From assembly GCF_021869535.1 (NCBI RefSeq), contig NW_026262729.1, forward strand, positions 62,001 through 126,000: a DNA stretch of 64,000 nucleotides. Reading direction: 5' to 3'. Origin of the DNA: Mytilus californianus (Eukaryota). A program made the position numbers and the translations under genes. The notes under the pieces were generated by a model. That model ran no database searches. It saw only the letters and a list, made by a program, of their open reading frames with translations, and was not told the origin of the DNA. Position 1 is the first letter of the stretch. Each line of letters starts with the position of its first letter. Below are positions 3,501 through 55,254 of the stretch, piece by piece.

Positions 3501-6500
3501 TTTCATATATAAAAGATTTGTTTGTAAGTAAGTATGTTTATACATAACCGTTAGACTTGGGGAGACTGCAATCAACATAGCAGAACAACTGTTGTAAAGT
3601 ATTAACCAAAACTATCAACAGTTTCAATACCAGACGGATAACAATCTCAATACTCCTGATACTTGTACCTGAAGTGCAAACTAAAATGCTTATATACTGC
3701 TTTGATAAATAATTGAAATTTCAGATAAAATGTGCTAATAAAAATTCCAACATGTTCCTTTTGTACTACCAAGTCTAGAGCCAGCTTTTTAAGAGCTGCA
3801 TCTATACAAAATTGTATTTAAATTTGTTTGATACAATATAATATGACCTTCTTAAATTTGTATTGAATACATTTTTTTTCAAATAAGTGGGATTTTTTTT
3901 TATAGTTTTTTTTTAGAATTCCAAGCCTGTTGTGTTGACTTTTTCTTGAAATGTAACGTCTGGTATCAATAAAGATTGCGACTTAAATCAACAAAATATA
4001 AAATAAAACAACTCAGCACAAAGTACTTAAATGAAACAAAATTTTAACAAAAAAATCATAGTCATTTTTTTTTCAATTACAGCGCACAACAACTTCTTGA
4101 AATGAAAATAAAATTGATCTAAATTAAATACTAACAAAGAAGAGACAATGCTAACAGAACAAAAAAATTAAAGTAGAAGAAAATAGTTCACAAAATTATT
4201 TCAACAATACAATTTTTTAAGGTAATTTAATACATATTTATCCAAATATTATTGCCACTTTGACGCTTTTCAATTTTTTTCTTTAACTCTGGATATATTT
4301 TGCAATATATTTTTCAGATTGGTTAGAAGCTTCGCGTGTTTTATTTGTGATTGGGATGGTGATATGCTTCCTGTCTATATTTTTAACATCTTTTGGACTA
4401 ACTACAGATTTATTTCATCGAAAAGAGAAATATTACATCGCTGGTATGACATTTATGGTACTTGCAGGTAGGCTTTATGTTACAATCACTCGGTATGACA
4501 TGTATGGTTCTTGCAGGTAGGCTTTATGTTACAATTACTCGGAATGATATGTATGGTTCTTGCAGGTAGGCTTTATGTTACAATTAATCAGTATGACATG
4601 TATGGTTCTTACAGGTAGGCGTAATGTGACAATTACTCGGTATGACATGTATGGTTCTTACAGGTAGGCTTTATGATACAATTACTCGGGATGACATGTA
4701 TGGTTCTTGCAGGTAGGCGGTATGTTACAATTACTCGGTATGACATGTATGGTTCTTACAGGTAGGCTTTATGTTACAATTACTCGGTATGACGTGTATG
4801 GTTCTTACGGGATGCGTTATGTTACAATTACTCGGTATGACATGTATGGTTCTTGCAGGTAGGCTTTATGTTGCAATTACTCGGTATGACATGTATGGTT
4901 CTTACAGGTAGGCTTTATGTTACAATTACTCGGTATGACGTGTATGGTTCTTACGGGATGCGTTATTTATCAATTACTCGGTATGACATGTATGGTTCTT
5001 GCAGGTAGGCTTTATGTTACAATTACTCGGTATGACATGTATGGTTCTTACAGGTAGGCTTTATGTTACAATTACTCTGTATGACGTGTATGGTTCTTAC
5101 GGGATGCGTTATTTATCAATTACTCGGTATGACATGTATGGTTCTTGCAGGTAGGCTTTATGTTACAATTACTCGGTATGACATGTATGGTTCTTACAGG
5201 TAGGCGTTATGTGACAATTACTCGGTATGACATGTATGGTTCTTACAGGTAGGCTTTATGATACAATTACTCGGAATGATATGTATGGTTCTTGCAGGTA
5301 GGCGTTATGTTACAATTATTCGGTATGACATGTATGGTTCTTACAGTTAGGCTTTATGTTACAATTACCCGGTATGACATGTATGGTTCTTGCAGGTAGG
5401 CTTAATGTTACAATTACTCGGTATGACATGGATGTTACTTGCAGGTAGGCTTTATGTTACAATTACTCGGTATGACATGGATGTTACTTGCAGGTAGGCT
5501 TTATGCTACAATTATTCGGTATGACATGTATGGTTCTTACAGGTAGGCTTTATGTTACAATTACTCGGTATGACATGTATGGTTCTTACAGGTAGGCTTT
5601 ATGTTACAATTACTCGGAATGACATGTATGGTTCTTGCAGGTAGGCTTTATGTTATGATTACTCAGTATGACATGTATGGTTCTAACTGGTAGGCTTTAT
5701 GTTACAATTACTTGGTATGACATGTATGGTTCTAACTGGTAGGCTTTATGTTACAATTACTTGGTATGACATGTATGGTTCTAACTGGTAGGCTTTATGT
5801 GACAATTACTCCGTATGGCATGTATGGTTCTTGCAGGAATTCATTATGTTACAATTAAACGATGAAATGCACGAAGTATCATTTGTAAAAAATGTTCTTT
5901 GACTCTTCCATTTTATAATAATTATGCTGTTATTGTGAAATCATTAAGTATAGAGTTTCTCTTGGTTTTTGGACTCCCCCAGATGTCAATACATGTCTTT
6001 TTCAATTGTCTTGTAAGAAACAGTTTATTGGCGACAGACTTTTTTGTAGTCTCTGTTGTATTTTTATCACAGCTATTCTAGACTCGGGACTATTTAGAGT
6101 TAGTTACATGGTGTAGACACTTGACAACAATTGACGAACGTATCTTGACCTCTAGATTTTTTTTTTCGTGTTGTTGGGTTTCTGTCTCATTGACGCATTT
6201 CATCATCTCTTTTTATTTATATGGTAGACGCCATTTTATTTCTATAAACATGATACATGGCTATTATCGAGGAAGTTATGTCGGATTCGTTTGAGCCTAC
6301 TTTAAATTTTTAACGCACATTGTATACTGACTTGAGAAATTTAACTCGATATAGAATAATATTAACCAAAGAAATTGACAACGAAAACTTTAAAGAAATC
6401 GAAACTTACCATTTAAAATTGTTTATACTTGAAAGAAAGCTTAGCCTAGTAACATGATATTATGCAGATTTAAATTTTATTTCAGCTATATCAGAAATGA

Positions 6501-29221: not shown

Positions 29222-29517
29222 CTACAACTGACCCGTGTTTGATAGCAGTGAAGCTATTTCGTCTAAACCGTTTCCATTTATTCCTATTTCTTGGCAGATC
29301 CGTAGAATATTATCCAATGTTTTGTGTTGACAAAGTAAAAGTATTTCGCGTGTTGTTTTCACAGGATTATTTCTGTTTTGCTGTAGAATTTTGTTGTATT
29401 CCACAACATCCAGTCCTAGCTCAAGCGCCAAATACAAACTCCTTGTCAACAACCTAACAGCCAACTGATTCAGCAAAAGAGGGGATAAAGTAACCTCCCG
29501 TAACCTGTCAATCTTAT
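29222..29517 (-). CDS. Roco-like last exon, death domain 2
   Basis: TTTTTCAG| ...LLNQLAVRLLTRSLYLALELGLDVVEYNKILQQNRNNPVKTTREILL...GQL*. Confidence 0.8.
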
Positions 29518-32500: not shown

Positions 32501-35500
32501 TACCAAATTTTAGTGCTTTGAATATTGAATTGAACATCGACCTCACGCAATTGAGACAAGCGCCAGTGGGGACCACCGGTGCGTTAATATATACCATTAA
32601 ATAGCAAACGAATTAATTTTCATCAGTTTCTGTAATAAATTTTAAATCAATCATTATGTTTACATCTATTTTATGATTGGTCTTGGGTCGAAGATTAAGC
32701 AGTTTCACTCTATTAGTTAACATTAAACACCAATCTAACAGGTGTATAAAAGGTGTTTTAAGTCCATAATAATATACATACACATTATCTCATATAAATG
32801 TTTTGTAATTTCAAATAACCTCATTGGTTAAAAACGGACCAATGAAATAGTGGATTGAAAGAATTATAGTAGTAGTATATCAAATTTCATTCTAATCACA
32901 GGAAAAATAATCAAACGATGTTATAAATCAACACGTTTTAAGTTTTATTCAATGAATATGTCATTTGTATATCTGACTGAATTAGATTTAATTTGTTCGT
33001 AATATTGTGTGTATAATTAATTGTGGTATCCAATAAATGTACAGATTGATTGATAAATCGTCCAAAAACAAAACAGAAAATTCACACAAAATATGTAACA
33101 AACGTGCTTAAAAGTGATTGCATGTAAATATAAAGAAAACCAAAACGAAACTTTGTCGGCTTTTCACAATGAAAACTAATTAATTGTGTTCTCTTGCCTA
33201 GACTTCAAATTATAAATTTAAGTTACAAAGTGTAATAATTATACAAGTTGTCTATCAAACGTCATGTGTTCGAGTCTATCAGTCATTAAAATTTATCTTT
33301 GCTTTTCGTCTTCCTATTTATATGATTTTAGGCAAAACTGCAAAAAATTCAAATACTCTCCGGTTTTGGTAACTCTTGAATATTCATTATTTTTATTCGT
33401 GTGTACAAAAGAAATAATCTGGAAAGGATTCAAGATTATAATAATTTTTCAAAATTTCATCCATTTGTTTTTGAATCTTTTGATATATTCAATAAGAAAT
33501 ATGATTCACTTTATTCATCCTAATGTTCTTGCTTCATGCACATCGTTTTTTAAACATCCAATTGCGAGATTACTTTTGTTCAACGCTGAATACCACCCTA
33601 AATTGTTTTACGTGTATATACATAGAACCAATAATCATGATAATACGCATATTGATAAGTTCTTTCAAACTTACTGTTTTATGCGATCACGGACCTTACT
33701 ACATAATTCGTATAAATTCTTTGTTAGAAATATAATTAAATTTTACCTGACTTACATATCCCATGGTCACTGTTAGTATCTCTGTGTATCTGAAAGACAA
33801 ATGAACAAAATGAAAGTAAATATTATAATTTCTTATTTAAAAGTTAACAAAATCGATGTTTTGAAAATGGAAAATTTGTGCAACCAGAATGCTATTTGTA
33901 TCAACATTTATTTTTTGACTAGCTACCAGAAATTGTAATAAATTTTGAACCAATTTTGAAATACATTAACTTTGATCATGAAAATTTCTAAATTTTGCAC
34001 ATGAAACAGTAAATAATGCATGTGTTGTTACCTGGAAAACACGTCTTAACATAAAATTAATTAATTATTTTTTTTATGTTTTTATAGTTTCAAATGACTT
34101 GAAACAAGCAACTGGATTTTATTTGATAGAAATGCATTGAATTATTTGATCTATAGATTAAATGATTGTTGGTGTTCACTTGAACAACATGAAAGGTATC
34201 ACTAGTGGAACATGATCTGTTTACCCTTAAGAAGCGGTTGAGCTCAACTTGGTGGGGTTCGTGTTGTTGAGTCTTTAGTATTCTGTGAAGTGTTTTGTTG
34301 ACTGCATGTTATTTGTCATTTTTTCTTCTCTTTGGCCGTGGTATATTTTGTTTGATTGTTCCCTTGGTATCTTCTACGTCTTTTTTTACACCCTTGCAGC
34401 ACATATTATATCGAGGCGAGGATCAAGAAATCAATAATGAAAAATGAAACTGAACTGAAAGGAAGGAAATGGAACCCGAAATGGTAACGAACTTTGACTG
34501 CAAAGGGAAGTATGTAAGAGTTAGATAGGGTCCAACAAATTTAGTCCTAAAAAGGCCCATAAGAGCCTGTTTGTTATGAATGATGTTTCGTGTTAGGAAC
34601 CTGAAACTCTCCAATTACTAACTAACGATTTTATTTGGATTATTCTTAGTTTTAGTTTTTAGTTTGTTTGATTTATACGGTGTATTTTGTTTGATTGTTG
34701 TTTAAGAACTCGTTAAAAATTCCCCTACCTTGCATTAAATTGGTTTTTATTCTTTACAATTGATCAGGTGTTTTATGAAGTGAAGAATTCGTACAGAATC
34801 CTCCTTTTTTTTCATGAAGTTCATATCTGTTCCTTACAATTGATACATTTTTGCAGGAAATCGTTAAAGAGTTTCACTACCTTGCATAACATTTCATTTT
34901 TTCGTAATAATTGATCAATCTTTTAGGAAGAATTCGTAATGGAGTTTCCTCATCATCATTATATATATATATGTTCTTTAATAATGACCAATCTTTTTGG
35001 AAGAATTCGTTTAGGAGTTTCCTTACCGAACACAGAATGTGTTTTTGTTCATCACAATTGATCAGTTTTTTTTTGGTTTTACTTACCATGCACAGAATGT
35101 GTTTTTGTGCACCACAATTGATCAGTTTTTTTTGGTTTTACTTACCATGCACAGAATGTGTTTTTGTTCACCACAATTGATCAGTTTTTTCTGCAGATCC
35201 TTCATTGTTAATTGTTTTGCCGTATTTCTCCAACCGATTAAGGTTAATAGTAACTGAGTATCTATATTTGAACTGGTATGCACTATAACCTCTGCTGTCA
35301 GTGAATTCAAAATTCTTCGTCTAGAACTAGGTGACATTCTTCTTATCATTCTGCTGAGATCTGAATCGGTGGCAGTTTCTGTCAAAGACTGAGCATTCAA
35401 GCCTACGGCGAAAAACAAAAGAAAACATTTATTCGTTCCATTATTCATTCGATGATAAGGTTTGATAAATTATCTTTACAAATGTTAAGGTAATAGTGGT

Positions 35501-38500
35501 ATAATAGAGTTATTGGTAGCGCATCCTTCCGCATCTACTAATATGGACATTTTTAAATCCATGCATTATTAGAATTATAAACCATTGACTCGATTTTAGA
35601 ACAGCTAAACAATTTCTTTTGTCATGATGACTTTGTGCATGTTCTTCTGTCGATATTTTTATTAGAATAATTTTTGGTCATTTCTATTGTAAACATTTAA
35701 TGTAGTTCTCTATATATAGATATGTATTTAAAAATTAAAAGACATTCCATTCCGGAGTCTGTCGCAAACAATTAATACACATTTTACATTCCTCGGTACA
35801 TATTGCCATTGTGCTTCTTATTTTATTTTTATTAGACCTATTTTAAAGGTTTTCTATAGCAAACATTCATTTAACAATATTTTGAACACTGACTTCTATT
35901 AGGACAGCTATATACAAGTAAGGAGATGTGGTATGATTGCCAATGAGACAACTATTCACCAAAGTTCAAATGAAGTGGATGTAAGCAATTTTGGGCAACT
36001 GTACGGCCTTTAACAATGAGAAAACCCCTAACCATCCCCATCAACATCTCCTCCTTAATCTCGCACATGGTCTTTTAATGGCCTAAATATTATTACATCG
36101 TCAAAAGAAAGACCAATAGGTGATAATCTAGGCAACATTTTACAAATCTACAACAAAACCTGACTACGTTTAAACCTAAAGATGAGAATATATGTTTTGA
36201 AATGCAACATGGCTTTCCCAACAATGCAAAATTAAACATACCTTCACATGAAGTGTTGCACTTGTCTACATCTATCATTGAACATGTCTGTTGAATATAC
36301 AACATGAACTGTATTGAGTCATTATATATTGTCTATGTTCGTAGATCCGTGTATACCATACTTTTGCAGTATTAAAATTAAACTATTGATTTTTTACTTG
36401 AGAGGGACTGCTGCTTACAAGAAAGTTATTGAATACAGATTTCTCAAAAATAGAGTAAGTCATCTCTTCGAAAGTTTGTCGGACTTAATCATAAATTGAT
36501 TCACCGTTATAGAATATCTCATATAATCACAGCTGTGTTCCCCTCACTGAATGCAACGTATCAAAGGATTGTAACTTACCATGAGCAACGTGACGGGTGA
36601 CAATAGTGAAACAGAAACAGTTTACCAGTTGCTTTTGGTTGAGTTAGTTTTGCTTAATATTTTCTATGTAATGTTTATGACTGTTCGTTTGTTTGTCTTT
36701 TCGACTTATGAGTTTGAATGTCTCTTTGGTATCTTTCGACTCTCTTTTAAGACTCCATCAGATGAGCATTTAAGTTTAAAATTCATATTTTTACGTGATG
36801 TGTTATTGCCCAAATATTTGATATTTTGACTCGGATTTACTTGAAACACGATTTTTTTTTTAATTTAATTTATAAATTTGCTTCAAGTTATTTTTAATAT
36901 GGCAAGATTGTGAACTACAATTGACATACATGATTTCAAAATACAAAGATGAATAGTAATGGTTGTGCTTTTTTGTTATTTTACTTTTTATTTTTATATA
37001 GCATATTTTTGGTAAAGCTTACAAGATTTCCCATGTGTTTTATATTCATTTTGAAAGATGACGATATGATTTGAAGAATCAATATAAAGAAATTTAACAA
37101 AGAAAAGAATAAAGAAACAGCTAACGTTGGGAATATTTAACAAGTTACTAGTACCTGGCGTGTAAGGTTCCATACACTGAGTATTTCTTGTGGATCCACA
37201 AACGTCCCATGTATTCTACATGTATACGAATCGATTTGCTCCAGTTTTGTCGAGGCAACAAAACAGGGAGGTGTGAGATTACAAGTTTCAAATTCCACGC
37301 ACAGTTCTTCTTTTTTCAATTGATTCTTATTTGTAAATACGTTTATTATTTGTTTTAATGTGTATACCGTTAGTTCGTGAATGCTACTGCAGATTTCAGC
37401 TTTTGAAGAACTTTGAGTTGGTTTATCAGAAGTATTTCTAGTTACGTGTAAAATTATCATGTCGGCATCATTGATAATACTTAAGCAATATAATGTGTCT
37501 ATGGTAAATGCAACGAAATTCTTAAATACAATCGGCTTGCCATGAATTCGTTTGAAAGGAAATACATCAAACAGTGCACACGATAACTGTTTGAAAATTA
37601 ACGAAATTTGAATGCAATTTCTTAGTCTATATGCAACGCATGCACTTTGATCAAATTTTCTAAACTGCAACGCAAGTCCATCGGGTGCCATCTCTTTCAT
37701 ATATGATGATAGAAACAATTCGGTGTGATGCGAACTTGACTGCAGTCTACATGAGTTGGTTGATGCTAAATAGAGTAAACATGTTATATGAAATAGCGAA
37801 TCATTTGCTGAGATGTAACACTTGGTGATACTTTTATCGACATAACCTTCACTCACAATCTTCAGTTTATCATGAAGAGGCGCACATTCGTATTTATCAT
37901 TACCTAACATTATTGACACATGATTGAAAAATATAACTAATTGATAAAGAATAGAAACGTCTACACAAATGTTGTTTAGAGTGTCATCTGATGGTAGACT
38001 AAGTATATTTCCGTTTCGAGTTTGATATTTTAAGAATTTTTCTACATCTAGCTTTGTTGGCACTGTAATATGCTTGGCTTGATTGACGCAGAGTTCTACT
38101 GCATCTCTATGGTTGATGATCCCAGCACTACTCTTCCTGGTTGAAATAATAACATCTTGTAAGGAAAGCCATGTTGCTGGCACAGGTGCCCTCGCCTCAA
38201 TAGTTTTGCATGCTATAGAGGAAATATGTTGAGTGAGTTTGACAATTTTATCAGTATATAAATCCTCAAATGTGAACTCTAGCTCATTGTCAATAATAAC
38301 GTAATCACACATGTCTGTGTTATCTACAATGTCTGTAATCGTCTTCAGCAATCCAGAACCATCTTTAGTTGCCTCCTAAATACGATACATGAAATCAATT
38401 TTCAATTGTTTTTAATTTTGGGTTACGTAATGTAATTCTAAACTGAATTTATATCATATAAGAATTAAAGAAGATTGTGGGCACCACAACGACACAAATA

Positions 38501-41500
38501 ATCATTAAACATCGATAAGTAAACATAAAGTCAGTGTGCATATAATAGATTGTGGTGTGAAGTCTCCGAAAAAAGAAATTCAGAGCTTAAATGAAAGAAA
38601 TGTATGAATAAAGCATTGTAGAAATATAGTATACCAATATCAGTTCAATGGTAAGTCCAGAAAATAAGAGTAAGCATTTGAATCGAGCTTTTATGTACCG
38701 TTCCTTGCAAAAATGAAAATAAATACTAATCATGAGAAGGAATTAGTAAAATAAAATGTTATCTCCTTTACAATACGTTTCTTATTTTTTAACTTGTTTT
38801 TTGTCGAAAACCATTTAGAAACAAATGCAGAGTGAGTATATCAAATAAGATAATTTTACTGCAACCAAAGACCTATGAAATTGTTATTCTCCTATAGATC
38901 TTTTTGTGTACAGGCTGTTCTTTCAACATAAACATCGTTGTAAACTTGACACAAATAAACCAATTAACTCTTTCTTACCTTTAATGTTAAAATTGCAAAA
39001 TTGTACTTTCAGCCAAATGTCAAATGAAATGATTCAGCCGAAGCTGTATAACAGAATAAATATACGCCAACATACACATTCCCTCGATTGTGTAACATCT
39101 ATCTCACTACATATATACAACTCGAAACTATACCTCTTCATTCGATCCGCAATTCAGAACAACAAAAACCATTTTAGAAAACATGTCGTCAGTTAAATCT
39201 TCATTCCGTCCAGTAATTGTATCCATCAAGTATTTTATATAATCTGTAATTTGAAAAAAGGTATTTCTTAATACCTAAAAAAATTAATACTTTTTTTTTT
39301 CATTCCTTATTAGCAGACGCTTCCACTCTTAAAGTCTATTTTTTCTTGTATAGATTGAATAAGAAAATGAAAACAACACTTTATTAATTTTATGAGTCCA
39401 AAGCGCTTTTCTGGATTTACCTTCATCAGGAACGCTCAAAGCCGAATATTTGAAAGCCAAGGATGTACAAGAACCGAAACAGTCGAAGGGCTATATTACT
39501 AAAAAAGGAACAAAAAAATAGCCAAATTCATCTAAGGTCAACTTTGTCAGAGGGAGTTGAAACCATAGTTTCTAATAATTTCGAAATTTATTAACGGACA
39601 ATTTTAGAAATGTTTGTTGTAAATCATGTCAGTACCGAAGTACCGAAGTGCTGGCTACTGGGCTAATGATACCCTCGAGGAATGATAGTCCACCAGTAGA
39701 GCCAGTGCTGTAAAAAATGAAAACAACAAGTTTTAAATTTTATGCTTCCGAGGCTTTTCTAGATTTACCTTCATCAGGAACGCTCACAGCCGAATATTTG
39801 AAAGCCAAGGATGTACAAGAACCGAAACAGTTGAAGAGCTATATTACCAAAAAGAACCTAAACAAAATAGCCAAATCCATCTAAGGTCAACTTTGCCTAA
39901 GGGAGTTGAAACCTTAGTTTCTAATAATTTCGAAATTTATTAACGGGCAATTTTAGAAAGGATTGTTATATATCATGTCAGTACCGAAATACTGACTACT
40001 GAGCTGATGATACCCTCGGGGACTGATAGTCCACCAGCAGAGGTATCGACCCAGTGCTGTAAAAAATGAAAACAACACGTTATGAATAATAACCGTACAC
40101 TATCTGTATGTTAAAAATTAATCCTAATTCTAGCATTATCGTACTCTTCTATCCCGTTTCGTGTCTTGTGCAATTTAAATCTGACATCGCATATTGCAAC
40201 GCTTAAAACTATTCAAACATTTTTTTTCCTATAAATGTTATTTTAAAATTGAAAATAAGGCACATAAATATGAGGGAGAATCTGCATTATCCATAACCCC
40301 CTCTCTCAATTAATTGATGGTGGTAATGAACGTTTTATGTCATAGCATAGCATTTAGAGAATCAGACAAGCAAAATTACAATCTTTACAAAGCATGTGGA
40401 GATTTTTGTAGGTTTTTTTATGTTTATATTTGTCTACAAAAGACTCATCAGTGACGCTCGAATCAAAAAAGTAAAAAGAAAAAGGCCAAACAAAGTACGG
40501 AAAAACTCTGTGAATTAAAAGCCACAGTTGATTGGAGATGATTTGAAATGCGATTAGATACAAAAATCCACATGTTCAACTTATAGTCTCCAATCATTTA
40601 TACTAGAGACAGTGTAGATGTTAGTTAACTACTCCATATATGGAACAAAAAAGCAAAAGAAAGGCCCTGTTATGCCAAAACAATCTAATTTATAAAGATA
40701 TACAATATTTTGTTAAAATTTACAAACTAGATTTTGAAAATAACCCTAAAGTTTCATTAGAATCTATAATTCTCTATCATGAAGTATTTTCTGTGCAACA
40801 CTCACCTCTATTTGTCACAGGAGTGTTGATTTCAGACAAAACAGAACAAAATCTATCGATATCGATATCTAAATCTAGAACAACAATATATATTGCACTT
40901 GACGTAAACAAAAACTTATGGGCTGCTGCGAATTCAAATTTTGTTGATAGTGAGCACAGAGAAATTGATGCTAGATTACTATTATCTGTATTCATTGTTC
41001 GCTTTACATGTTCGAATGTTTCATAAACCTGCTTTCTGTTTTTCACTAATGCCACTTTAGGATCTAGATTTACGGTTTCTGACATTTCTCCATGTATTAT
41101 CGTATCCATTTTCTGTTGTATTGTTTGTGCCGCTTTTGCAAATTTTTTCTTAGTATTTGATACGAACTGCTTAAATTTTACTTGAGCGCCATCACTAGGA
41201 ACACGTTCAGCTGCATCGAAAGAATTGACGCTATCACCTGATGGCATGGAGATATCCATATTACCCAGTGACACGACGCTCCTTTCAGATTTAAGGGAAT
41301 ATAAACTAGTTGATGTTGTAGACCTTTGCAACAGTAAATTACTACTACTACTGTTATGCAGACCATTTAAATGAGGACTAAGACTGAATGGTTTTAGCTG
41401 CAGTTCTGGAGCATAGACAGTGTTACTTCTAAACAGATAAGACTGTTTATTTGCTTTGAGGCATTTCTCGTTCTCTGCTTCTGTTTTGAAATCATGTGTG

Positions 41501-44500
41501 TTGACATAGTGTCGGACGACCTCTCCCATCTGTCTGTGAACTAATTCCGCATCTGAAACTGAGAATAGTATTGTGAATCATTATAAAAATAATTATTTAT
41601 TTCAAAGTAGTGACTATTAAATTGTTTATTTCATTTTGTATTTTATAACATGTCCCTTGTTTCTATATATTATTTATATAAACCTTTAATATCAAGTTTA
41701 CACAATATTACTGAATTCGGTTTTATACGTCTTTACTATTTTTTTTTAACTTACACTTTAATTTTGATTTGAGTTTTTAATTGTGCACAACAAGGCATAA
41801 AATAAACGTTTTTATCCTTACGGACACCACATGTGATCACATACCACTAGACAGTTGTCTGATGCTACTACCCCGTTCAACATAAGCACAGAAAAAAATA
41901 AGGCGAATTCTATGCATGGATATTTTTTCTTTAACTTTGTACTCATGTAAGAACTGAATTTCCGGGTAAAACATGTGTATTCAAAAACAGTAGTTTACCA
42001 ATGTTCCAATCTGGTAAATCGACTAAAAAGTGATAAATCAAGGTAACAAATAAAAAGCGGGGGTATCACATGAACTCCAAAAGAGTGAGACCGGTGTATT
42101 GACAGTGTAAGCATCTCCTGTTATGCATGCATTACCCGACATGCGAATTCAAACTCAGTCAAAATGTCACATAAACTTGTGCAAAAATGGTCAGTCATAT
42201 CAAGTGATATAGAAATTAATTTTAAATACTTTTTTCGTGTGTTATCCATTCTCCACTTTCAATATTCATTTCACACATTCCATTATAGATATTTATTCCG
42301 TTTTCAATGTCTACATCTTTATCAGAGTAAGTTGACTGACGAATGAGAGCACGCATAACAACCATAGCAGAACGGTCATTTAATCCAATCACCCGTACGC
42401 TTACATCAGATGGACGGTATTCGCTTTTTTCGAGGCAGATTCGAAATTCTTCTGGTGTTAAAGTAAACATTTTCTCTGTAGATAAAATAATAAGTATACA
42501 CAAAATGAAGTTTGTTTTATAGTTTACTTATTTATACATGTATATATAGTGTCAGATTTCAAACATTTTATCTTTATTCTTTTGTTGCTCTTTTTTTTGG
42601 GGGGGGGGGGGGGGGGGGGGGAGGGGGGTTCCATTAGATTTGACGTTTCAACGACAACTCAAACTACTTAACCTGCTTATATGAAATTATGTCGCCCTAC
42701 ACTCTTATATCGATTTCTGTTCGTGTATGACCTTTCCATGGCTATGATATCATTACAGGTTACAAGAGCGCAATTATTTGTTTACATTTTACCGGCAAGT
42801 TTTTTTACCCCAAGATGGTACTCAGAATAGAATCCTATACGGCTTCTGATTGGATGATGCAGGATTGGAATTACATTTAATCGAAAGCCTATCCAATTAG
42901 GTTTAAAAATTGCAGAAAATCATATTCACATTTTACGAAGTATAGAAAATATCCTCCATTTCTGCACGATCCTATATATTTTTTTGGTTGTAATGCAACA
43001 CTGGCATTTCTAGTAACAGGAACTGCAATTCGTTTTTCCTAAGTTTGTATAGTCTTCGAGAAAAAAAATACGGAACACCAGTGGTACCCTATGGAAAATG
43101 CATTACGAATAATTGCGCTCTTGTAACCTACACATGCATTTCATATTAAGGAAGCAAAAAATGAAAGTTAAACACAGAGGAAATGTCCAAAAGTTATTCC
43201 ATACATCTAGAAAGTCAAAGACAATTTTATTTTTTTTCAATTCTGAAACATATATATTTCAAGCAAAGGATCGCGGAAAATATGCATTGTTACTTTGTAC
43301 AACAATATTTTACATGCACATATGTGTCGTGGTCAATTTCGTCGAAGAGTTGATGGTCAATACTTAAATCAGTTGAATAATGTTTCATTTTGATAAATGT
43401 TGACATTTTATACGATATATGGGATGGATAAGTTTATCAAAATATTCAGTTACCATAATGCAAGCTTTGGTGTAAAATAAACTGCATATGTCAGTAGAAT
43501 GATTTCATGAGACTTGTTAGCTTTAGCATGGATGTAAAGCTATACATATCTATAAGTTATTAGTTAGAATATCAACTAGAGCACACGCAATTTTATTAAG
43601 AGATTGTATTTATGATCACTCATTTTATGTCTGGTATATTTTACATGTTATATGAAGATATGTGAATATTAATGATGTGAACATTAAACAAACTTTTAGA
43701 TTTAATAACTAGTGGATAAGGATAGAGAAATATTATAGCTGGTTCCCTATTTTGATGGGCTAATGTCATATGAGTATGGATTTTACGATCCCGGACCCAT
43801 AATCCGAACTTGCACAATAGCTATTACACATAATATAACATAAAGATCAATCACTATACAAACACTACCATGCTAACGATTATTACTGTTACGATATAAT
43901 TCATTATTCTTTTTGAAGTCATTTAATATCTTGCAACCATAGGATCATCAAATCCATCCCCTACTTTTCATTTTTGCGAATCTTCTTGGTTTTTTTAATG
44001 TCTATATTTGTTTACGAATATCCTGTCATTTTTGCACTCAAGATGTACTTAAGAGGTTAAATCTTACATACCATTTACTTGTTTTGTAGCTGAATATGAT
44101 GTAAAAACAAGTAAACAATTATAATGTCGAAACCGCACAATTAGATATGTGGTTTGGTCTTTGTTTACGAAATAACTATTTACACAAGCCATTCTCATTT
44201 ACAAACATAGGAAGATATGTTATGTCTTCTTATGTTAAACATTCACAATATAATCCTGTATTAAAGAAATTTGCCTGGATGAGTAGGTATTCTTCATGTT
44301 ACTTTGGTTCTTAGAGTTTCAAAAATTTGTGAATGAATGCATGAAACTGCTGTAGGCATCAAAATTTTGAACACGCTTATATTGATTGCGGGGGAAATAC
44401 AGTTTTTATTCTTTCGGCTACCTAGAAAAAAGACACTCCAAATGATAAAGACACCGAACAATACACATTTGACTTAATATTGCAATAGTATATTTTAAGC

Positions 44501-47500
44501 TGTTGCACAACAAAGTGCTAATGACAAGACCTCGAAATAAGGTAAATCAGTTTTGTAGTTTTTGCAGTTTTTTGTATCAAATGTAAGAAGTTTAACGCTT
44601 ACAGCAAACATGTAGGACAGAAGTAGAAGATACTGATATTTGACAGACTATCAACAGGTGCGAGACGATATTTGTTAAAATATGTATATATATATACTGA
44701 AAAACCTTCATGTATTCAATATTTGTACATATATATATTTTAAAAAACCATCGTCTCGAACCTGAGACTAGTGAGAATATCGTCTTGGGAATATCTAATG
44801 GTGGCTAATGATTTTGTAACACTTTTATATTTCGAATTCAATTGGCAACTTGACCTTATGATACCTTCTGCTCAAAAGAATAAAAGGAACAAGCCGCTTT
44901 CATATCAAAACAAAACAAAGCTTTGCAGTTTGCAATGTGAGTCTCTATGTGTTTAATTATGTTAAAGAATTTTGTTTTTTTATTTCACACAAAAGTTATG
45001 AGGTCATGAACAAACGAAACAAAACATATACAAACCTTGCTTCCGTAGGGCCTGTATGATAAAAAAAACTCGGGCTTTACCAAATGAATACATGCATACA
45101 CATAATTGATTCATTTTAGATGGTAGTCTTGTTTTTCCTATTATACCTGTGCAAAAACCATTCATAACAATTTCACAAATATAATTATCATTTTTCGCAC
45201 TCTTCTTATACTTTCACAATGTTAAAATCAAATAAAATCACATCCCTTTTTGTTTATATCACTACTTACATCATGTTGTAATTTTAGCAGAATACTATAG
45301 CTGTTATTTAAAAGAATGCAATAGTCATATATGTTACCTTTATCCCATCAGCATCGCTCAGTAGTTCAACAATTCTTTCCAACTGTCTGCATTTTTCTTC
45401 TTTTTTCAGTTTTTTCGTTTTGCATAATGATTCAATAGCTACATCCAAGGCTGTCTTTTTAAACTGTATTCATAAAATTCATTAAATAAAAATATATTAA
45501 AAAAAGATATATACCTTTTTCCCATATGTCAAATTTCCTTCATCATGTATACTCAATGCAAAATAGTATCAGAGCAAAATACACATAACTTATTCGGACA
45601 AAGTGCATTTTAGCCTTATTAGATCGGTAAAGGGATTCAATTAGCAATTCTTATTAAAGAAGGTGATTGGTAATGTTACAATTGGGACAACTATCTACCC
45701 GAGACCAAATGACGTAGATGTTAGCAACAACAGGTCATCGTACGACCATCAGCAAAGAGCAAAACCCATATCGCACAACAATAGATAATAGGCATCGACT
45801 TGTACAAAACTACTTACGAAACTGTGACACTAGGTATGAATGATCTTATCGATTTGATGTTTTATTGAAACTAATAATGATCAATTATTACTTGGTTATA
45901 GGAATATATATGTCACAGATAAACACGGTTGAAGCCACATTCTTTCTTTGTTTATGATTTATCTACAAATGCGACTTATAGCCAAATCTTTACTTTCTAT
46001 CATAAGCAACACGACAGATGCAACAAGTGAGGCAGGAACTGCATACCCTTCTGTTGCATCTGCCTTCGCGAAAAGATTTTTTTTTTTTTTTTTTTTTATT
46101 TCATTTTTGATATTTTCTATTTTTCTATCCGTTATTGTAGGAAAAAACTATATGCAGTTTCATTTTAAGATACTGTATTTGTGAATAAGTCTTTTAAAAT
46201 TGTCATGAACTGATAAATGATAAATGGTAATGTTCATAGCAATGCACTATTGTAAGATGTTTTAATACCGATTTGACTTATCGTCTATGATAATTCGTTT
46301 GCAGTTGAAAATATCTGTCCTTCTTGGACTGATGATTTTATTGCCCCTTGGTAATTCATCACTTTTTTATCATCATTCTAGAAAGATGCTTAATAATTTG
46401 ATATCAGTCTCCATCATTTTCATCTGACAGAAATATTATAAATTATACTTACATTGTGAAAGTTGTACACAAATATGATTATTTTAATCTTGACTGTTTA
46501 TCGGATTAAACATACTGAGTAAACTTTATTGTGTGATTTTAAAAGACAGAGTTGTATCTTTTGCATAATTTTCATATTGGATGTTTCTACCCAATTATTT
46601 TTGAAATAAAGGATGCCAAAGATAATGCTTGGTATGTTTCTTGTCGTGGCTTACACCTGTATATAGGCAGTGAGGATCGGTTTGACAACTTTAATTTTCA
46701 TATATCAATACAAGTATTCCTACAGCACCTAAATATGGAGTTTTGTGAATCTGTCAATTGATACCATATTTCAGCGATTGTGTGCTTCATATCAGGATTC
46801 TTTGAAAAGGTGATTGGTACTTAAAAGAAGCTACTGTGACACTACTTATGAATGAGGTTATTAATTTGACGTTTTATTGAAATTAATAATGTTCAATAAT
46901 TTCTTGGTTATCGGAATATATATGTCACAGATAGACACGGATATATTCCTTTTGTTGAAGCCACCATTCTTTCTTTGTTAATGATTTATCTACAAATGCG
47001 ACTTATAGCCAAATCTTTACTTTCTATCATAAGCAACACGACAGATGCAACAAGTGAGGCAGGAACTGCATACCCTTCTGTTGCATCTGCCTTCGCGAAA
47101 AGAAATTTTAATGGAGATCAGTTGCTTTTACTTTCGTTTTTTTTCGTTTTTTATTTTTTTATTTTTCTATCCGTTATTGTAGGAAGAAACTATATGCATT
47201 TTCATTTTAAGATAATGTATTCGTGAATAAGACTTATAAAATTTTCATGAACTAATAATTGATAAATTGTAATGTTCATTAGATAACCAAGGAAGCAACG
47301 CACAATTATGAGATGCTTTAATACCGATTTGACTTATCCTCTATGATAATTTGTTTGCAGTCGAAAATGTCTGTCCTTTTTGGACTGATGATTGTATTGC
47401 CTTTTGGTAATTCGTCACTTTTTTATCATTATTCTAGAAAGATGTTTAATAATTTAATAGCAGTTTCCATTAACTTTATCTGACAGAAATATAATGAATT

Positions 47501-50500
47501 AGACTTGCATTGTGAAAGTTGTACACAAATATAATTAATTTAATCTTATTTGTTTGTCGACTTAAACATACTGGGTTAACTTCATTGTGTGATTTTAGAA
47601 GGCAGAGTTGTATCTTTTGCATAAAGTTACCGATTCGTCATTGACAGATAGCTTTCGTACTCGTTTAGTTTTTCAGTTAGAACAAAAAGAGGGAGGGGCG
47701 CAAAGGGGCAATCAAAAACAATGTCGTAAAAAGCAGGGCCAAAATGAAAAACATTGCATAAAAATCTAGATTGTGCAACACAAAACAGGTGCTCCGGAAG
47801 GGAAGCAGTTCCTGTTCCACTCGTGGAAACCGTTGTGTTACTCGTGGAAACAAATAAAAATTGGATGGTAAGTTGCATTCGGTGATTTCACAATTTAGTA
47901 AAGGAGGATGTGAACAAGACTACATATGTTGTTCTTTGGCCATACACATATTAAACGCCGTTTATTTCACTTAACATTATAAAACATACCAAACAAATGT
48001 ACATACCTTACTGTGTACAGTATAGTCGCCACCAACCATAACAAGTCTACGTACACAGTCATAGTGACCATATTTACTAGTTATGTATATTGGTGTTTCA
48101 TCATTCTATGAAAAATATACACTAGAAATATAGATTCTCCGTTTCAGAAATATAATGCATTATGTGTTATATTTTTGGTGTACTCTGCGATCACATTTTG
48201 TATTTTTTTTAACAATGTGTTTAAATTGAACATTGGATCGTTATATCATTGATGCGTCAAACAAATAAGGATCATATCAGTATTTTTATAAAATGTAATT
48301 AGTTAAATTTCAATAATTGAATACGTTTGATTCGAAATAGAAGTATGATAGCATCATATTTTAAATAAGAAAATAAGATGTTAAGTTTGTAAAAAATCAA
48401 ATTTCACGTTGAAGTAATGATTGAACAAGAAGTTAAATATTATTTTCATTAAAAAAAAAGTTTTAAAAAGTTGTCCACCGTTTCTAAGAAAGGATTACTC
48501 ACTTTATTTCTGTGATTTACGTCTGCTCCAAGTTCTATCAAACGACACATGATATCAAAGCAACCTTTGTAGGAAGCATGAATTAATGCTGTCTCGCCAT
48601 CCTGTAACATCAAGGTATTGTAAAACATTATCGTGGTTTTGTCAATACAATTGTTAGATGACTACCGTTGTACAGTATCAAATGACCATTCCTTTTTTCA
48701 ATATATTTATTTATGTTACATTTGGAAAACACAGATTTCAGAAATTCTGTAAATTAACTAAAATGTAGTATTTAACTGTCTATACAAATTCAATATTCAA
48801 TTCTGTTCTGTCTGTTTCAGTTGTGGTAGCATGCTAATGGATTTGACCAAACTTCTAACTATATATTCATGATATACCAGATAGAAAATTTAAAACTTAC
48901 TTTGTAGTGGTGGGATTCAATCGTATGATCCAATACTGTGTATTATCACAATACAAATCAAGATTCATTTATTTATCTCTAATTTTAATTAAAACTTTTA
49001 TTAATTCGAATACGTGTATAATTTTCACTGATATATAAGAAATAATGACAAAATAGTGGTGATATTTTTAACAACTGCATTTTATACTAAATGCTAATGA
49101 ATTCAGTAACATTAATGATAATTGACTAAATTCCTTTTAAATATAAAGACGGAATGTGAAGAACACGTAAGAATTAAACTTTTATAGTTTTACATCCTTG
49201 TTTTCATTCTCCGTTGCAAAGACTTGCAATTCTCCAGTTTTCAAGAATGCAGTGCATTTCTTAATGAAGTATATAATTAATTCAAAATCGTCAGTAGATT
49301 GTTCTATGTTAAACCAAATAAGATGGAAAATTAAAATATTTGAGTTTCTTTTTGTTCAGTGCCTTCTGGATGGACGAACATCTAACTGTACGTGTTATAC
49401 ATTTGGGTTCTGCCAATTTTTTAAGGACGTACGGTGAAGTACATGTATAGTTGCTTCAATCCACGTCATCTGAATTCCGGGGGATAGGTGTCTCATTGGC
49501 AATTATATCATATCTCTTTATTTTATGATATAGGTCTTTATATAGACTTACAACATCAGCTCTATCTACAGAAGCACCTTGACAAACCAAACTTTCAAAA
49601 GAATCCAAGTTACCATACTGTGTGGCTTTTATTAGACTTGTTCTTCTGTACTGTGTTAGAGAAAATGTTTATATTTATCATATAATTCGATAAAAATGGC
49701 CAATCGATAAATCCAGGTGCACCTTTATCTGTTGTAATCGTTACAATTCCTATCAAAAATACACTTATGAACGTACAATGAAAGAAATAAAACATGGAAA
49801 CTGTAATGAAATGCAGTTTATGTGTGAACCTCATTCTTTCCAAAACGGAATATGCCTATATTAAAACATTATTTATTTTTGGCTTGTCCCAAAATAATAG
49901 CTTGTAAGTCGTCTGAACAAATTATTGCATCTTTTCAAGATGAGTAGATTAAGCAATGAAAATAAATCTTATTCTACATTAAAAATAACCGTCTATCAAT
50001 GATGTTATTCATTTATGATTGATTCTGCATTTGGATAAAGGGACAGTCATAAAATGATGTTCTTACTAGGTCAGACTTGTCAACTGTGGCTCCTTCCTTC
50101 AAATAAAACTTCAGCTTCTCAGTATCGTTTTTGTCAGCAGCCCATAGCAGACACTGTGAAAAACACAAATATATACATTGTATTGCTTGTTGTTGTGTAA
50201 GGAGTAAATTAGAAGTTTGTATAGTTATTTGGCATTTTGGCATACAATTGATACATGGCAAAGAGAATATTTGTGTGGAATTGAAATTGCGATGGTCAAA
50301 ATCTTATTGTTGTTGATCATTGTTGTCTTAAATCCATTTTAATGTTCAAGATAATATACAATAATGTAATAATTGGTTGAAATTTTGGTTTTAGTGGAAT
50401 AATGCTCGGAAGTAGTCGTTTGACGACTTTTCAATCATATGTGCAGATAACGTATAAGTGATCATTTTAGCTGTTCAAAGATTTTGTTTATCTATTATAA

Positions 50501-53500: not shown

Positions 53501-55254
53501 CTGCTCGTTTTTCCATAAAATTGAATTGAAAAGATCGAGGGTCAAATCTGTGATGAAAAACATGCACTACAATAATTTCTGGACCTATGAGCTGTACGGA
53601 TGTGAAAATACGGACTGTCAAACAGAAAAATGGCTTATAAAACATGCAAAAAACAATCTAGATGTTCATATAAACCCACTTGGAAGGCTATATTATTCTT
53701 CAACTATCTAAAAATCAATTTTATTGTACAAAAACTTTCATATTTAAAAAATTCACCATGGCCAAAATGAGAAACTAAACTTCTAACTGTGTATTGCTAC
53801 CTTACTCAAGAATTCAAAATCTCTGAAAGACCTTTTAAACATCCTTATTTGCGATTGGATAGGCAATAGTAACGAAAATGGTAAATAATACCTCTAATGC
53901 TATTGCATGAATACTACAGCAAGTCAGCTGTGTAAGTAGCACATTGAAGAAGAAATTATACAAGCAAACGATCTTCATTTTGTCTTCGACTCTAATGAAT
54001 TATTAAATAGACAGAACAATATCATTTGTCACAGGATAAAGGATGTGATACGGATTTATTACTTGCAAAAAAGGCAAAAAAAATCAATGAATTCAAGGGT
54101 TGCGATAAAATATTGTTCTGGTCGTACGAAGATTAAAGGCAGGTTTAAGCAAAGGAAATAGCAAACTACATTATTGCAGAACCGCATTTAAAGAATGCGT
54201 GATTCTTCCGTTCTATCTAATGAGAATTGGAAGTTGTGCTATCTACCCTTGAAACTTTTCGTTTTATTTTTTTCATTTTTTTTACTGAATCTTTTTTATT
54301 CTAATTATAACAGAGCTCAATTTTAAATGGGGAAGACTTCCTATTGTCGAACTTAATCAAAACTGTCAATTGACCATCTGATCAAATTGAAAGTTACACT
54401 GCCTTTTGGCACCATATACGATTTGCTAAACTTTATAGTCTTCATGTATCAGTTGGATACATATATATATAGTTTCAACCACTGCAAAATGTGTGATACG
54501 ATATTTCTCCTCTCAAGACATTTCAATTTCCATATTCAAAGCATGAGGCTTGCCAAGCAATTTAACTGTCACAAGTGGACATAAATCGTATTGCAAGAGA
54601 TTTGGTGGTAGAATCTGTTTTTCGAATTATTTTAGAGAATATGCAGATATGTAGACAAACATTATCTTTCTTTTTACCTTCAAAAGATGTGTTCTTTCTA
54701 TGTGACGTCATTATGCATGGTTGATTTTTTTGTAACGTCACAATAAGAAAATTCAGAGGAAGGCAAGAAAATTTGATGTCATAATTGATTTTTGACCAGT
54801 GAACCACACACTGATTATAAGAAAAATTATCATTTAATCGGAAAACGTTGAAATCGACTGAGAATTAGAGAAAATATTTTACCAAGTGATCAGTTCAGTA
54901 AAATGATATAACCTGAATCTTTTTTATCGATCCTACTTAAAAGGTATGATACTTCATGAGGTTAAGTCACAGTTACTTTTTAGTGAGAGTGTCATGAAGT
55001 CAGCTTGACAAAATATAAGTGTTAAATACATACATCAACAAAGTAAGAAAATCAAGATAAATTCAACAAAAATATCTTTATCATTACAAAGAAACTACAG
55101 ACCAAATCTAATTTTGATTTTTTACCATTTCATAGTAATTGATGTACTGTGTATTCAACCTTACAAAATTCTATGTACTTTTCAAAAACAAATATAATAT
55201 TCAGTTTACACCAACCTCATTAAGTTGCTTCTGTTTTCTTGCCGCAGTGGACAT
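29222..55254 (-). CDS. Roco-like protein ANK-ROC(degenerate)-COR-Death-Death, 13 (or 14) coding exons, about 1114 (1120) aa
   Basis: Exons: 55216-55254, 50067-50153, 48503-48601, 45338-45463, 45036-45051, [44072-44089 optional], 42230-42475, 40806-41552, 39134-39243, 37155-38375, 36242-36308, 35146-35402, 33756-33789, 29222-29517. All are GT-AG, phases are consistent throughout, and the total is 3345 nt without internal stops. Motifs: ankyrin GETALIHAS..G..LIELGADVN; ROC-like FEFAAAHKFLFTSSAIYIVVLDL; COR-like PVPATWLSLQ and DVEKFLKYQTRNGNIL; two death-fold-like exons. Confidence 0.8.
30119..30198 (-). mobile_element. 5'-truncated copy of the tRNA-SINE at 10347, with 13-bp TSD
   Basis: (GATT)n plus TTTAACGCCACTTTCA..CTATTTC.TGGCGGTCAGTTTTTATTG as at 10350-10430. 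ATATAGCATTGAT flanks it at 30106-30118 and 30199-30211. Confidence 0.8.
33756..33789 (-). CDS. Roco-like short linker exon
   Basis: TCTTTCAG| followed by IHRDTNSDHGI, then T|GTAAGT. Phase 0 to 1. Confidence 0.72.
34700..35190 (-). repeat. Tandem array spanning the donor of Roco death-domain exon 1 (3 young 59-60-bp units plus older degenerate units)
   Basis: AAAAAACTGATCAATTGTG(G/A)TG.ACAAAAACACATTCTGTG...G|GTAAG gives donors at 35145, 35086 and 35026. Degenerate CAAG|GTAG and AATTGATC copies continue to about 34700. Confidence 0.85.
35146..35402 (-). CDS. Roco-like death-domain exon 1
   Basis: CGCCGTAG| ...TDSDLSRMIRRM...LLLTLIGWRNTAKQLTMKDLQKKL..., then CATG|GTAAGT. Confidence 0.78.
36242..36308 (-). 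CDS. Roco-like linker exon
   Basis: AATACAG| followed by FMLYIQQTCSMIDVDKCNTSCE, then G|GTATGT. Phase 0 to 1. Confidence 0.7.
37155..38375 (-). CDS. Roco-like COR-domain exon
   Basis: TATTTAG| EATKDGSG continues into the 404-aa ORF and ends CAG|GTACTA. Contains PVPATWLSLQD and FLKYQTRNGNILSL. Confidence 0.85.
39134..39243 (-). CDS. Roco-like exon, ROC G4-equivalent region
   Basis: AATTACAG| followed by DYIKYLMDTITG...KMVFVVLNCGSNEE, then |GTATAG. Confidence 0.75.
39364..40078 (+). repeat. Head-to-tail dimer (about 350-bp period) of an interspersed repeat in a Roco intron
   Basis: AAAATGAAAACAACA occurs at about 39364, 39714 and 40064, and GGATTTACCTTCATCAGGAACGCTCA occurs twice. A related partial copy is at about 52930. 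Confidence 0.85.
40806..41552 (-). CDS. Roco-like exon, Ser-rich insert and degenerate ROC G3 region
   Basis: GTTTCAG| ... ISLCSLSTKFEFAAAHKFLFTSSAIYIVVLDL ... AGAG|GTGAGT. Matches ORF 40777-41529. Confidence 0.85.
42230..42475 (-). CDS. Roco-like exon, start of ROC (degenerate G1 and G2)
   Basis: TCTACAG| ... EEFRICLEKSEYRPSDVSVRVIGLNDRSAMVVMRALI...ENGINIY..CEMNIESGEW, then |GTATTT. Confidence 0.78.
44072..44089 (-). CDS. Roco-like candidate symmetric 18-nt microexon (ATKQVN)
   Basis: CATATTCAG|CTACAAAACAAGTAAATG|GTATGT, open in phase 1-1. Optional for frame. Confidence 0.4.
45036..45051 (-). CDS. Roco-like 16-nt microexon (ALRKQ), required for reading frame
   Basis: TTTTTTTTATCATACAG|GCCCTACGGAAGCAAG|GTTTGT supplies the phase 0-to-1 change the model needs. 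Confidence 0.65.
45338..45463 (-). CDS. Roco-like ankyrin-cap exon
   Basis: AATACAG| followed by FKKTALDVAIESLC...LLSDADGIK, then |GTAACA. Confidence 0.8.
45813..47623 (+). repeat. Direct segmental duplication of about 760-790 bp (45813-46570 and 46834-47623) in a Roco intron
   Basis: Near-identical spurious ORFs 45948-46184 and 46975-47226. Shared ends CTGTGACACTA and GAGTTGTATCTTTT(T)GCATAA. Confidence 0.9.
48503..48601 (-). CDS. Roco-like ankyrin exon (99 nt, one repeat)
   Basis: GTTACAG| followed by DGETALIHASYKGCFDIMCRLIELGADVNHRNK, then |GTGAGT. Confidence 0.88.
50067..50153 (-). CDS. Roco-like ankyrin exon
   Basis: TTCACAG| followed by CLLWAADKNDTEKLKFYLKEGATVDKSDL, then |GTAAGA. 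Confidence 0.8.
55216..55254 (-). CDS. Roco-like candidate first coding exon (MSTAARKQKQLNE)
   Basis: Acceptor TTTTTAAAG| at 55272, ATG at 55254, donor GAG|GTTGGT. It joins to give KQLNECLLWAA, an ankyrin-type start. Confidence 0.6.

Follow-up and report, generated by a model that had tools for sequence, protein, structure and literature searches.

Can a Roco protein lose its guanosine triphosphatase (GTPase) switch and remain a working gene product? Roco proteins are defined by this switch, and its control of COR dimerization and of the output domains is debated for LRRK2. The question is raised by a gene on the minus strand of a 64,000-nucleotide stretch of the Mytilus californianus genome (contig NW_026262729.1, positions 62,001 to 126,000), which we call the window. 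We propose that the window gene encodes a functional, divergent Roco: its ROC would keep the fold of a G domain without the residues that bind nucleotide, and the protein would act as a nucleotide-independent adaptor. We give this reading a probability of about 0.7.

The coding sequence was pieced together with three full-length RefSeq models as guides, each titled 'uncharacterized protein': XP_076085572.1 of M. galloprovincialis (P0030), XP_071146745.1 of M. edulis (P0029) and XP_063408852.1 of M. trossulus (P0028). It starts on the minus strand with the ATG at 55254, and its last codon, at 29225, is directly followed by a TAG stop codon at 29222-29224. The 15 coding exons all have AG/GT sites and add up to 3534 nucleotides, or 1178 codons, with no internal stop. 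The window protein is 82% identical to P0030 and to P0029, and its close protein matches come from Mytilus only. The window itself is AT-rich (GC content about 32%). A sequence-only reading had placed an uninterrupted frame of 13 exons and about 1114 residues at 39134-42475. The frame is indeed uninterrupted, the counts were too low, and these coordinates hold only three ROC exons of a much longer gene. The protein consists of four ankyrin repeats, a ROC-like G domain, COR and two Death-like domains. We compared the gene with two further loci, one in M. edulis (L001, GCA_905397895) and one on a divergent mussel-like 91-kb ENA contig (L002). In order of translation the exons are:

55216-55254, minus strand: exon 1, start codon, MSTAARKQKQLNE; same as the P0030 N-terminus, GT donor.
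50067-50153, minus strand: exon 2, ankyrin repeat 1; tblastn of P0030 and P0004, AG/GT sites.
49552-49650, minus strand: exon 3, ankyrin repeat, 99 nucleotides; tblastn of ortholog proteins, assembled coding sequence.
48503-48601, minus strand: exon 4, ankyrin repeat, 99 nucleotides; Pfam Ank E 1e-6, assembled coding sequence.
48007-48105, minus strand: exon 5, ankyrin repeat, 99 nucleotides; tblastn of ortholog proteins, assembled coding sequence.
45338-45463, minus strand: exon 6, end of the ankyrin region and linker helix; tblastn of ortholog proteins, assembled coding sequence.
45036-45051, minus strand: exon 7, 16-nucleotide micro-exon (ALRKQ plus 1 nucleotide); the sole AG...GT candidate that gives the orthologs' ALRKQ and the phase for exon 8.
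42230-42475, minus strand: exon 8 (Ea), ROC beta1-alpha1-beta2-beta3 hairpin with dead G1 GLNDRSAM and G2 IENGI; RNA junction to exon 9, alignment.
40806-41558, minus strand: exon 9 (Eb), insert of about 190 residues, then dead G3 CSLSTK, alpha2 and beta4; RNA join of 41558 to 42230, L001, alignment.
39134-39243, minus strand: exon 10 (Ec), alpha3 (DYIKYLMDTI) and beta5 with dead G4 VLNCGS; RNA contig to exon 11, alignment.
37155-38375, minus strand: exon 11 (Ed), 1221 nucleotides, ROC alpha4-beta6-alpha5, then COR-A and COR-B; phmmer, hhalign, fold matches, RNA contigs past 37155.
36242-36287, minus strand: exon 12, 46 nucleotides, Cys-rich linker; AG/GT block conserved in the window and L001, fits P0030.
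35146-35402, minus strand: exon 13, Death-like domain 1; hhalign to tandem Death tails, E 3e-15.
33747-33789, minus strand: exon 14, 43-nucleotide linker; local alignment to P0030 1066-1080, AG/GT sites.
29225-29517, minus strand: exon 15, Death-like domain 2; tblastn 87% to the P0030 C-terminus, hhalign.

We located the GTP-binding motifs with MAFFT alignments of five orthologs against six canonical Roc-COR proteins. At G1, VG..G.GK[ST] (GxxGxGKT) has become IGLNDRSAM: the first glycine is retained, and Gly, Lys and Thr are gone. In the window protein G2 changes from ST[DNE]GI to IENGI, G3 from WDF.GQ to CSLSTK and G4 from THxD (or TFAD) to NCGS. WGE, invariant at the start of COR-A in canonical proteins, reads ARE. 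The residues lost are the P-loop Lys and Thr, the switch-I Thr, the switch-II Asp and Gly and the specificity Asp, which make the contacts to nucleotide and magnesium. GTP (guanosine triphosphate) binding in human ROCO proteins requires the P-loop lysine (PMC3995007). The flanks are conserved, namely the helix before G1, the beta2-beta3 hairpin G.C..N.E.GEW, H..F.....AIY..V.D and DY...L..I.

All strings quoted by the sequence-only reading are found on the minus strand: VIGLNDRSAM and ENGINI in exon 42230-42475, ISLCSLSTKFEF and AHKFLFTSSAIYIVVLDL in exon 40806-41558, and DYIKYLMDTI and VFVVLNCGS in exon 39134-39243. The alignment puts the motif strings at G1, G2, G3 and G4. All four motifs are replaced alike in the window protein and in the orthologs of M. 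edulis, M. galloprovincialis and M. trossulus, as that reading had claimed for the window. In L002 only three are replaced (G1 by GLNDCSIQ, G3 by SALSAR and G4 by SLNS), and the Thr at the G2 position is retained. IGLND.S, ALS(T/A)(K/R) and LN(S/C) are shared among the orthologs. Since Mytilus orthologs and L002 carry the same or similar substitutions, the replacement residues themselves are conserved. A Roc GTPase has functional G1-G4 motifs. The window protein has none and is a Roco member by descent, not a Roc GTPase.

Is this a gene under selection? The M. edulis locus and the window are collinear for more than 20 kb; exons are about 84-86% identical, introns about 67-80%, and Eb is intact in the M. 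edulis locus. Over 833 aligned codons, the ratio of nonsynonymous to synonymous substitution rates (dN/dS) between window and M. edulis is 0.26 (bootstrap 0.21-0.34), with a dS of 0.35. By part, the ratio is 0.26 (0.16-0.43) in the ROC core, 0.31 in the insert and 0.23 in COR. Exon Ea, which held the P-loop, is the most constrained part (0.10). L002 carries the window gene's ortholog exon for exon, far more diverged: identities are 65% for Ea, 50% for Eb, 52% for Ec, 42% for Ed, and 48% and 54% for the Death-like exons. The motif replacements are conserved in at least five genomes, and the gene is under purifying selection.

The strong constraint on Ea suggests that the old pocket region is now a structural or a binding surface. 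It could also mean that the pocket was remodeled, so that ROC still binds nucleotide or another ligand and works as some kind of switch. Conserved replacement motifs and the constraint on Ea, both of which suggest a functional pocket region, speak for a remodeled pocket; what makes such a pocket improbable is the simultaneous loss of the Lys and Ser/Thr of the P-loop, the Asp and Gly of switch II and the Asp of G4. To our knowledge, no G domain binds guanine nucleotide when it lacks these residues altogether.

The descent of the gene is not apparent from domain databases. Scanned with Pfam and NCBIfam, single exons and full-length orthologs (E <= 5) alike yield ankyrin repeats only (Pfam Ank E 1e-6 for a window exon, 1e-21 for full-length orthologs). 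No kinase domain was found in the full-length orthologs in these scans, which agrees with the kinase-less protein that had been proposed. Searching PDB sequences with phmmer gave no match, either for P0001, an older M. edulis model, or for the Ea and Eb part of P0004. An exhaustive phmmer search of P0001 against 1.8 billion representatives found 12 proteins in all. Of the seven distant matches (E 2e-8 to 3e-4), six contain Pfam Roc, COR-A or both, and five of these contain the two together. The remaining one, a repetitive fibronectin-III protein, looks like chance. The Roc/COR matches come from Mercenaria, Sinanodonta, Tegillarca and Mytilus, and differ in their accessory domains (Ank, SH2, Death, caspase, HEPN, PHD). 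In these phmmer alignments, exons Ec and Ed align with the Roc end and COR-A of P0008-P0013, with COR directly C-terminal to Roc. The COR-like exon that had been expected downstream is the 1221-nucleotide exon 37155-38375. A word search that used ROC-COR of P0030 returned one further Mytilus model only, because the 90% cluster representative is short.

Profiles give a much stronger signal. We built one profile from the window gene's orthologs alone (A3) and one from 21 canonical bivalve Roc-COR proteins (A4). Aligned with hhalign, the two match over 713 columns that begin before G1 and run to the end of COR, with a probability of 99.9% and an E of 2.1e-31. The MAFFT alignments set the quoted strings exactly at G1-G4, and with an hhalign E of 2e-31 the match is far beyond chance. 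Judged by this profile match, the window gene descends from Roc-COR proteins.

Does the protein still fold like one? AlphaFold2 was run on residues 186-975 of P0030, the M. galloprovincialis ortholog. The model has a predicted local distance difference test score (pLDDT) of 69 and a predicted template modeling score (pTM) of 0.69, with the insert modeled as disordered or helical. The secondary structure elements come in the order of a Ras-like domain (beta1-alpha1-beta2-beta3...alpha5), and COR comes next. Against the PDB, Foldseek places Roco proteins in all of the top 37 matches, led by C. tepidum Roco (E 5.9e-14) and followed by LRRK1, LRRK2 and M. barkeri Roco2. A second aligner ranks LRRK1, LRRK2 and M. 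barkeri Roco2 first, with Z scores of about 21-23 over 450-480 residues (LRRK1 631-1306, LRRK2 1318-1866). Taken by itself, the G domain is similar to Rag, Rab and Rho GTPases, with a Z of 15-16 over about 170 residues (root-mean-square deviation about 2.5 A). ROC is thus predicted to retain the Ras-like/RocCOR fold. The sequence-only reading had set a structure search as a test of its idea of Roco descent; the search returns ROC-COR, with LRRK1, LRRK2 and C. tepidum Roco as matches, in line with the hhalign result.

How does the window protein compare with known systems? Its nearest counterparts in domain order are the canonical bivalve Ank-Roc-COR-Death proteins (P0134 of M. galloprovincialis, P0136 of M. 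californianus) and an M. edulis Ank-Roc-COR protein (P0009). Ank, a Roc with a large beta2-beta3 insert and COR are shared, in this order, and the tail of the window family is homologous to the canonical tandem Death tail. In contrast to the window family, from which all four motifs and WGE are absent, the canonical proteins keep GxxGxGK[ST], ST-DGI, WDFGGQ and mostly THxD, and are recognized by Pfam. In the canonical relatives that we fetched WDFGGQ is near-universal, and GxxGxGKT and THKD are present wherever models are complete. Many canonical models that seemed to lack G1 are truncated at the N-terminus or have G1 more than 450 residues upstream. Among the relatives surveyed, loss of all motifs is found in the window gene's ortholog group only. 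The insert of about 190 residues between G2 and G3 is not peculiar to the window gene, since bivalve Rocos as a whole share this feature; canonical relatives commonly have inserts there, the longest of about 480 residues.

DAPK1 consists of a kinase, a calmodulin-binding region, Ank, ROC, COR and Death, so that its non-kinase part has the same order as the window protein. The window protein differs in lacking the kinase, in having two Death-like domains and in a ROC without P-loop; the DAPK1 ROC is known to bind GTP (reviewed in PMC4104024). In structure the closest matches are the RocCOR modules of LRRK1, LRRK2 and C. tepidum Roco, with Z about 16-23 and Foldseek E values as low as 6e-14, at an identity of only about 10-13%. 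Those three are active GTPases whose dimerization is governed by nucleotide state, and the window protein is without their LRR, kinase and WD40. Class-I pseudoGTPases (p190RhoGAP pG1/pG2, CENP-M, the AAGAB N-domain and degenerate septins) have kept the G-domain fold, lost the G motifs and serve as protein-interaction modules. The window family shows the same combination, with the fold predicted, and none of these known cases is a ROC joined to COR.

Transcripts were found in two runs of one sample in one study (X1 and X2). Their contigs skip introns, and contig depth lies on exons and is absent on unique intron sequence. Hence the contigs must be derived from RNA. Junction 41558|42230 occurs in both runs and junction 38374|39134 in X2; three junctions are backed by spliced contigs. 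The junction of exons 10 and 11 is placed at 39134|38374 with one unplaced letter, and the acceptor AG sets the exon start at 38375. Beyond exon 11, the match of the X1 and X2 contigs to the window stops at 37155, where more than 950 nucleotides of further sequence follow. Two acceptor AGs lie 6 nucleotides apart at Eb (41552-41560, cag|TTTCAG|ATG). The RNA contigs take the upstream one, and use of the downstream one would drop two residues in frame. Alternative or older Mytilus models (P0001, P0003, P0004) divide the ortholog of the window gene. P0004, a RefSeq isoform X2, ends by read-through into the intron after Eb. The fragmentary P0001 skips Eb and reads through the Ed donor. The Eb-skipping form has no support in the RNA contigs examined, and the skip is an annotation gap, because the M. 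edulis locus has an intact Eb.

Several points weigh against our reading. The Pfam Roc, COR and Death models stay below threshold in the window gene's family. Expression is low, with a contig depth of about 5-10 in two runs of one study, and a 6% sample of a raw RNA run (X21) has zero reads on the exons, a result that is uninformative rather than negative. Canonical Rocos were part of the AlphaFold input alignment, so that the fold does not count as evidence independent of homology. Moreover, the modeled protein is not the window protein: an ortholog 82% identical to it was modeled instead, because the window's spliced protein is without a single reference. The AlphaFold2 model of the C-terminal 218 residues, all-helical with two bundles, has low confidence (pLDDT 52), too uncertain for a fold search, so the tail was compared by profile. 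Nucleotide binding persists in some pseudoGTPases. Finally, a role in immunity or apoptosis would follow from domain analogy only.

Could the gene simply be a decaying paralog, or an annotation artifact, without function? Pfam's blindness to Roc, COR and Death, the low expression and the fragmentary older M. edulis model that skips an exon would fit such a view. We consider it very improbable, since the 3534-nucleotide frame is open across 15 GT-AG exons, the gene is intact and collinear in M. edulis and L002, three species have full-length RefSeq models, and the RNA contigs are spliced. The upper bootstrap bound of dN/dS is 0.34. The sequence-only reading had named an untranscribed locus with dN/dS near 1 as evidence against its proposal; we find spliced RNA contigs and a ratio of 0.26.

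The Death-like tail is linked to the same family. Pfam's Death hidden Markov model gives no match in the tail of the window family. The C-terminal 200 residues match the tandem Death tails of canonical Ank-Roc-COR-Death proteins by hhalign (98.5%, E 3.2e-15, 184 columns). The end of COR-B (about 37155-37330, minus strand) has a conserved Cys/His pattern, C..PPC...D.Y.C..H...DP.E....W. This pattern is common to canonical bivalve Rocos, has a weak CHORD match in one relative, and may be a metal-binding element.

How would such a protein work? We propose that the ROC, as a class-I pseudoGTPase, cannot bind or hydrolyze GTP in the canonical way, and from this we infer an adaptor that works independently of nucleotide, with ankyrin repeats that would bind partners. 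Roco proteins dimerize through COR-B, in a monomer-dimer cycle driven by nucleotide state (PMC6337361). In the window protein COR would dimerize without a GTP-driven cycle: a permanently empty ROC would abolish the cycle and may hold the protein in one state. For the Death-like tail we propose recruitment of death-fold signaling proteins from the expanded immunity and apoptosis repertoire of mussels. Mollusc fusions of ROCO domains with immune adaptors have been noted earlier (PMC9334734).

The sequence-only reading had likewise suggested a protein that would not bind GTP, and a scaffold or decoy that could heterodimerize via COR. A decoy or regulatory subunit would pair through COR-B or Death-Death contacts with GTP-competent Ank-Roc-COR-Death paralogs and modulate their switch. 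Degenerate septins and pseudokinases modulate partners in this way in hetero-oligomers. Mytilus has dozens of intact Roc-COR paralogs, some of them also with Ank and two Death domains, COR is under constraint (dN/dS 0.23), and there are precedents for pseudoGTPases as interaction modules (PMC12490416, PMC10731463). The phylogeny makes us doubt this version. The five pseudo-ROC sequences form one clade (100/100) in a tree that omitted three Death-bearing paralogs. L002 is outermost, and the window sequence lies outside the species of the edulis complex. The stem of the clade is very long; its place among canonical Rocos is not given by the tree because of the long branches. As the clade is only about 14-18% identical to the canonical paralogs, a shared COR interface is not evident. 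We hence regard the decoy as unlikely, though clearly less so than a remodeled pocket, and keep to the nucleotide-independent adaptor.

In L002 (812-3931), 61 tandem copies of a 51-base-pair (bp) unit stand at the start of the intron after Ea. Each unit consists of the last 34 nucleotides of Ea (IETGEWIIHDK), the donor GTATGT and 11 nucleotides of intron. With 17 codons per unit, the frame is open throughout the array and each copy has an in-phase donor. Use of a later donor would add 17-residue blocks exactly at the site of the ROC beta2-beta3 insert. The variable inserts of bivalve Rocos may have arisen in this way. In the window, a 59-bp tandem repeat (35031-35190, 2.7 copies, 95% matches) doubles the 3' end of exon 13 (Death-like) together with its ATG|GTAAGT donor; M. 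edulis has a single copy. A 49-bp unit (4443-5857, 28.9 copies, 90% matches) contains ...TTCTTACAG|GTAGG.... Taken together, the three arrays suggest a recurrent tandem amplification of splice junctions in these genomes. Between Eb and Ec, the intron contains 2.1 tandem copies of a 349-bp unit and a short element (window 39364-40087 and 40429-40477). Their summed DNA contig depth is 10^4 to 3x10^5, compared to about 20 for unique sequence, and they occur in RNA contigs too. They are high-copy interspersed repeats, probably like short interspersed nuclear elements (SINEs) or miniature inverted-repeat transposable elements (MITEs). A run of 30 G with one A lies in the intron just upstream of Ea (42599-42628).

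What does the finding mean for Roco proteins? A conserved, expressed member without nucleotide-binding residues and with a fold predicted to be kept would indicate that the RocCOR module can be used without its switch. Roco would then join the GTPase families that have pseudoenzyme members. Searches of open-access text turned up no published pseudo-ROC, no paper that links Roco proteins or LRRK2 with pseudoGTPases, and none on Roc-COR in Mytilus. The chances are about even that this is the first natural pseudoGTPase within the family, with a permanently nucleotide-free RocCOR selected across mytilid mussels. The impact is limited because the gene is lineage-restricted and belongs to a hugely expanded family, and loss of catalysis is common in such expansions. 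The domains of the uncharacterized RefSeq proteins of three Mytilus species can now be named: Ank, pseudo-ROC, COR and a Death-like pair. If our reading is true, the protein would be a natural 'apo-locked' comparator for how the nucleotide state of Roc controls COR dimerization in LRRK2-type proteins. It could also partner with the GTP-competent Roco-Death proteins, an expanded set in the innate immunity of mussels, and regulate them.

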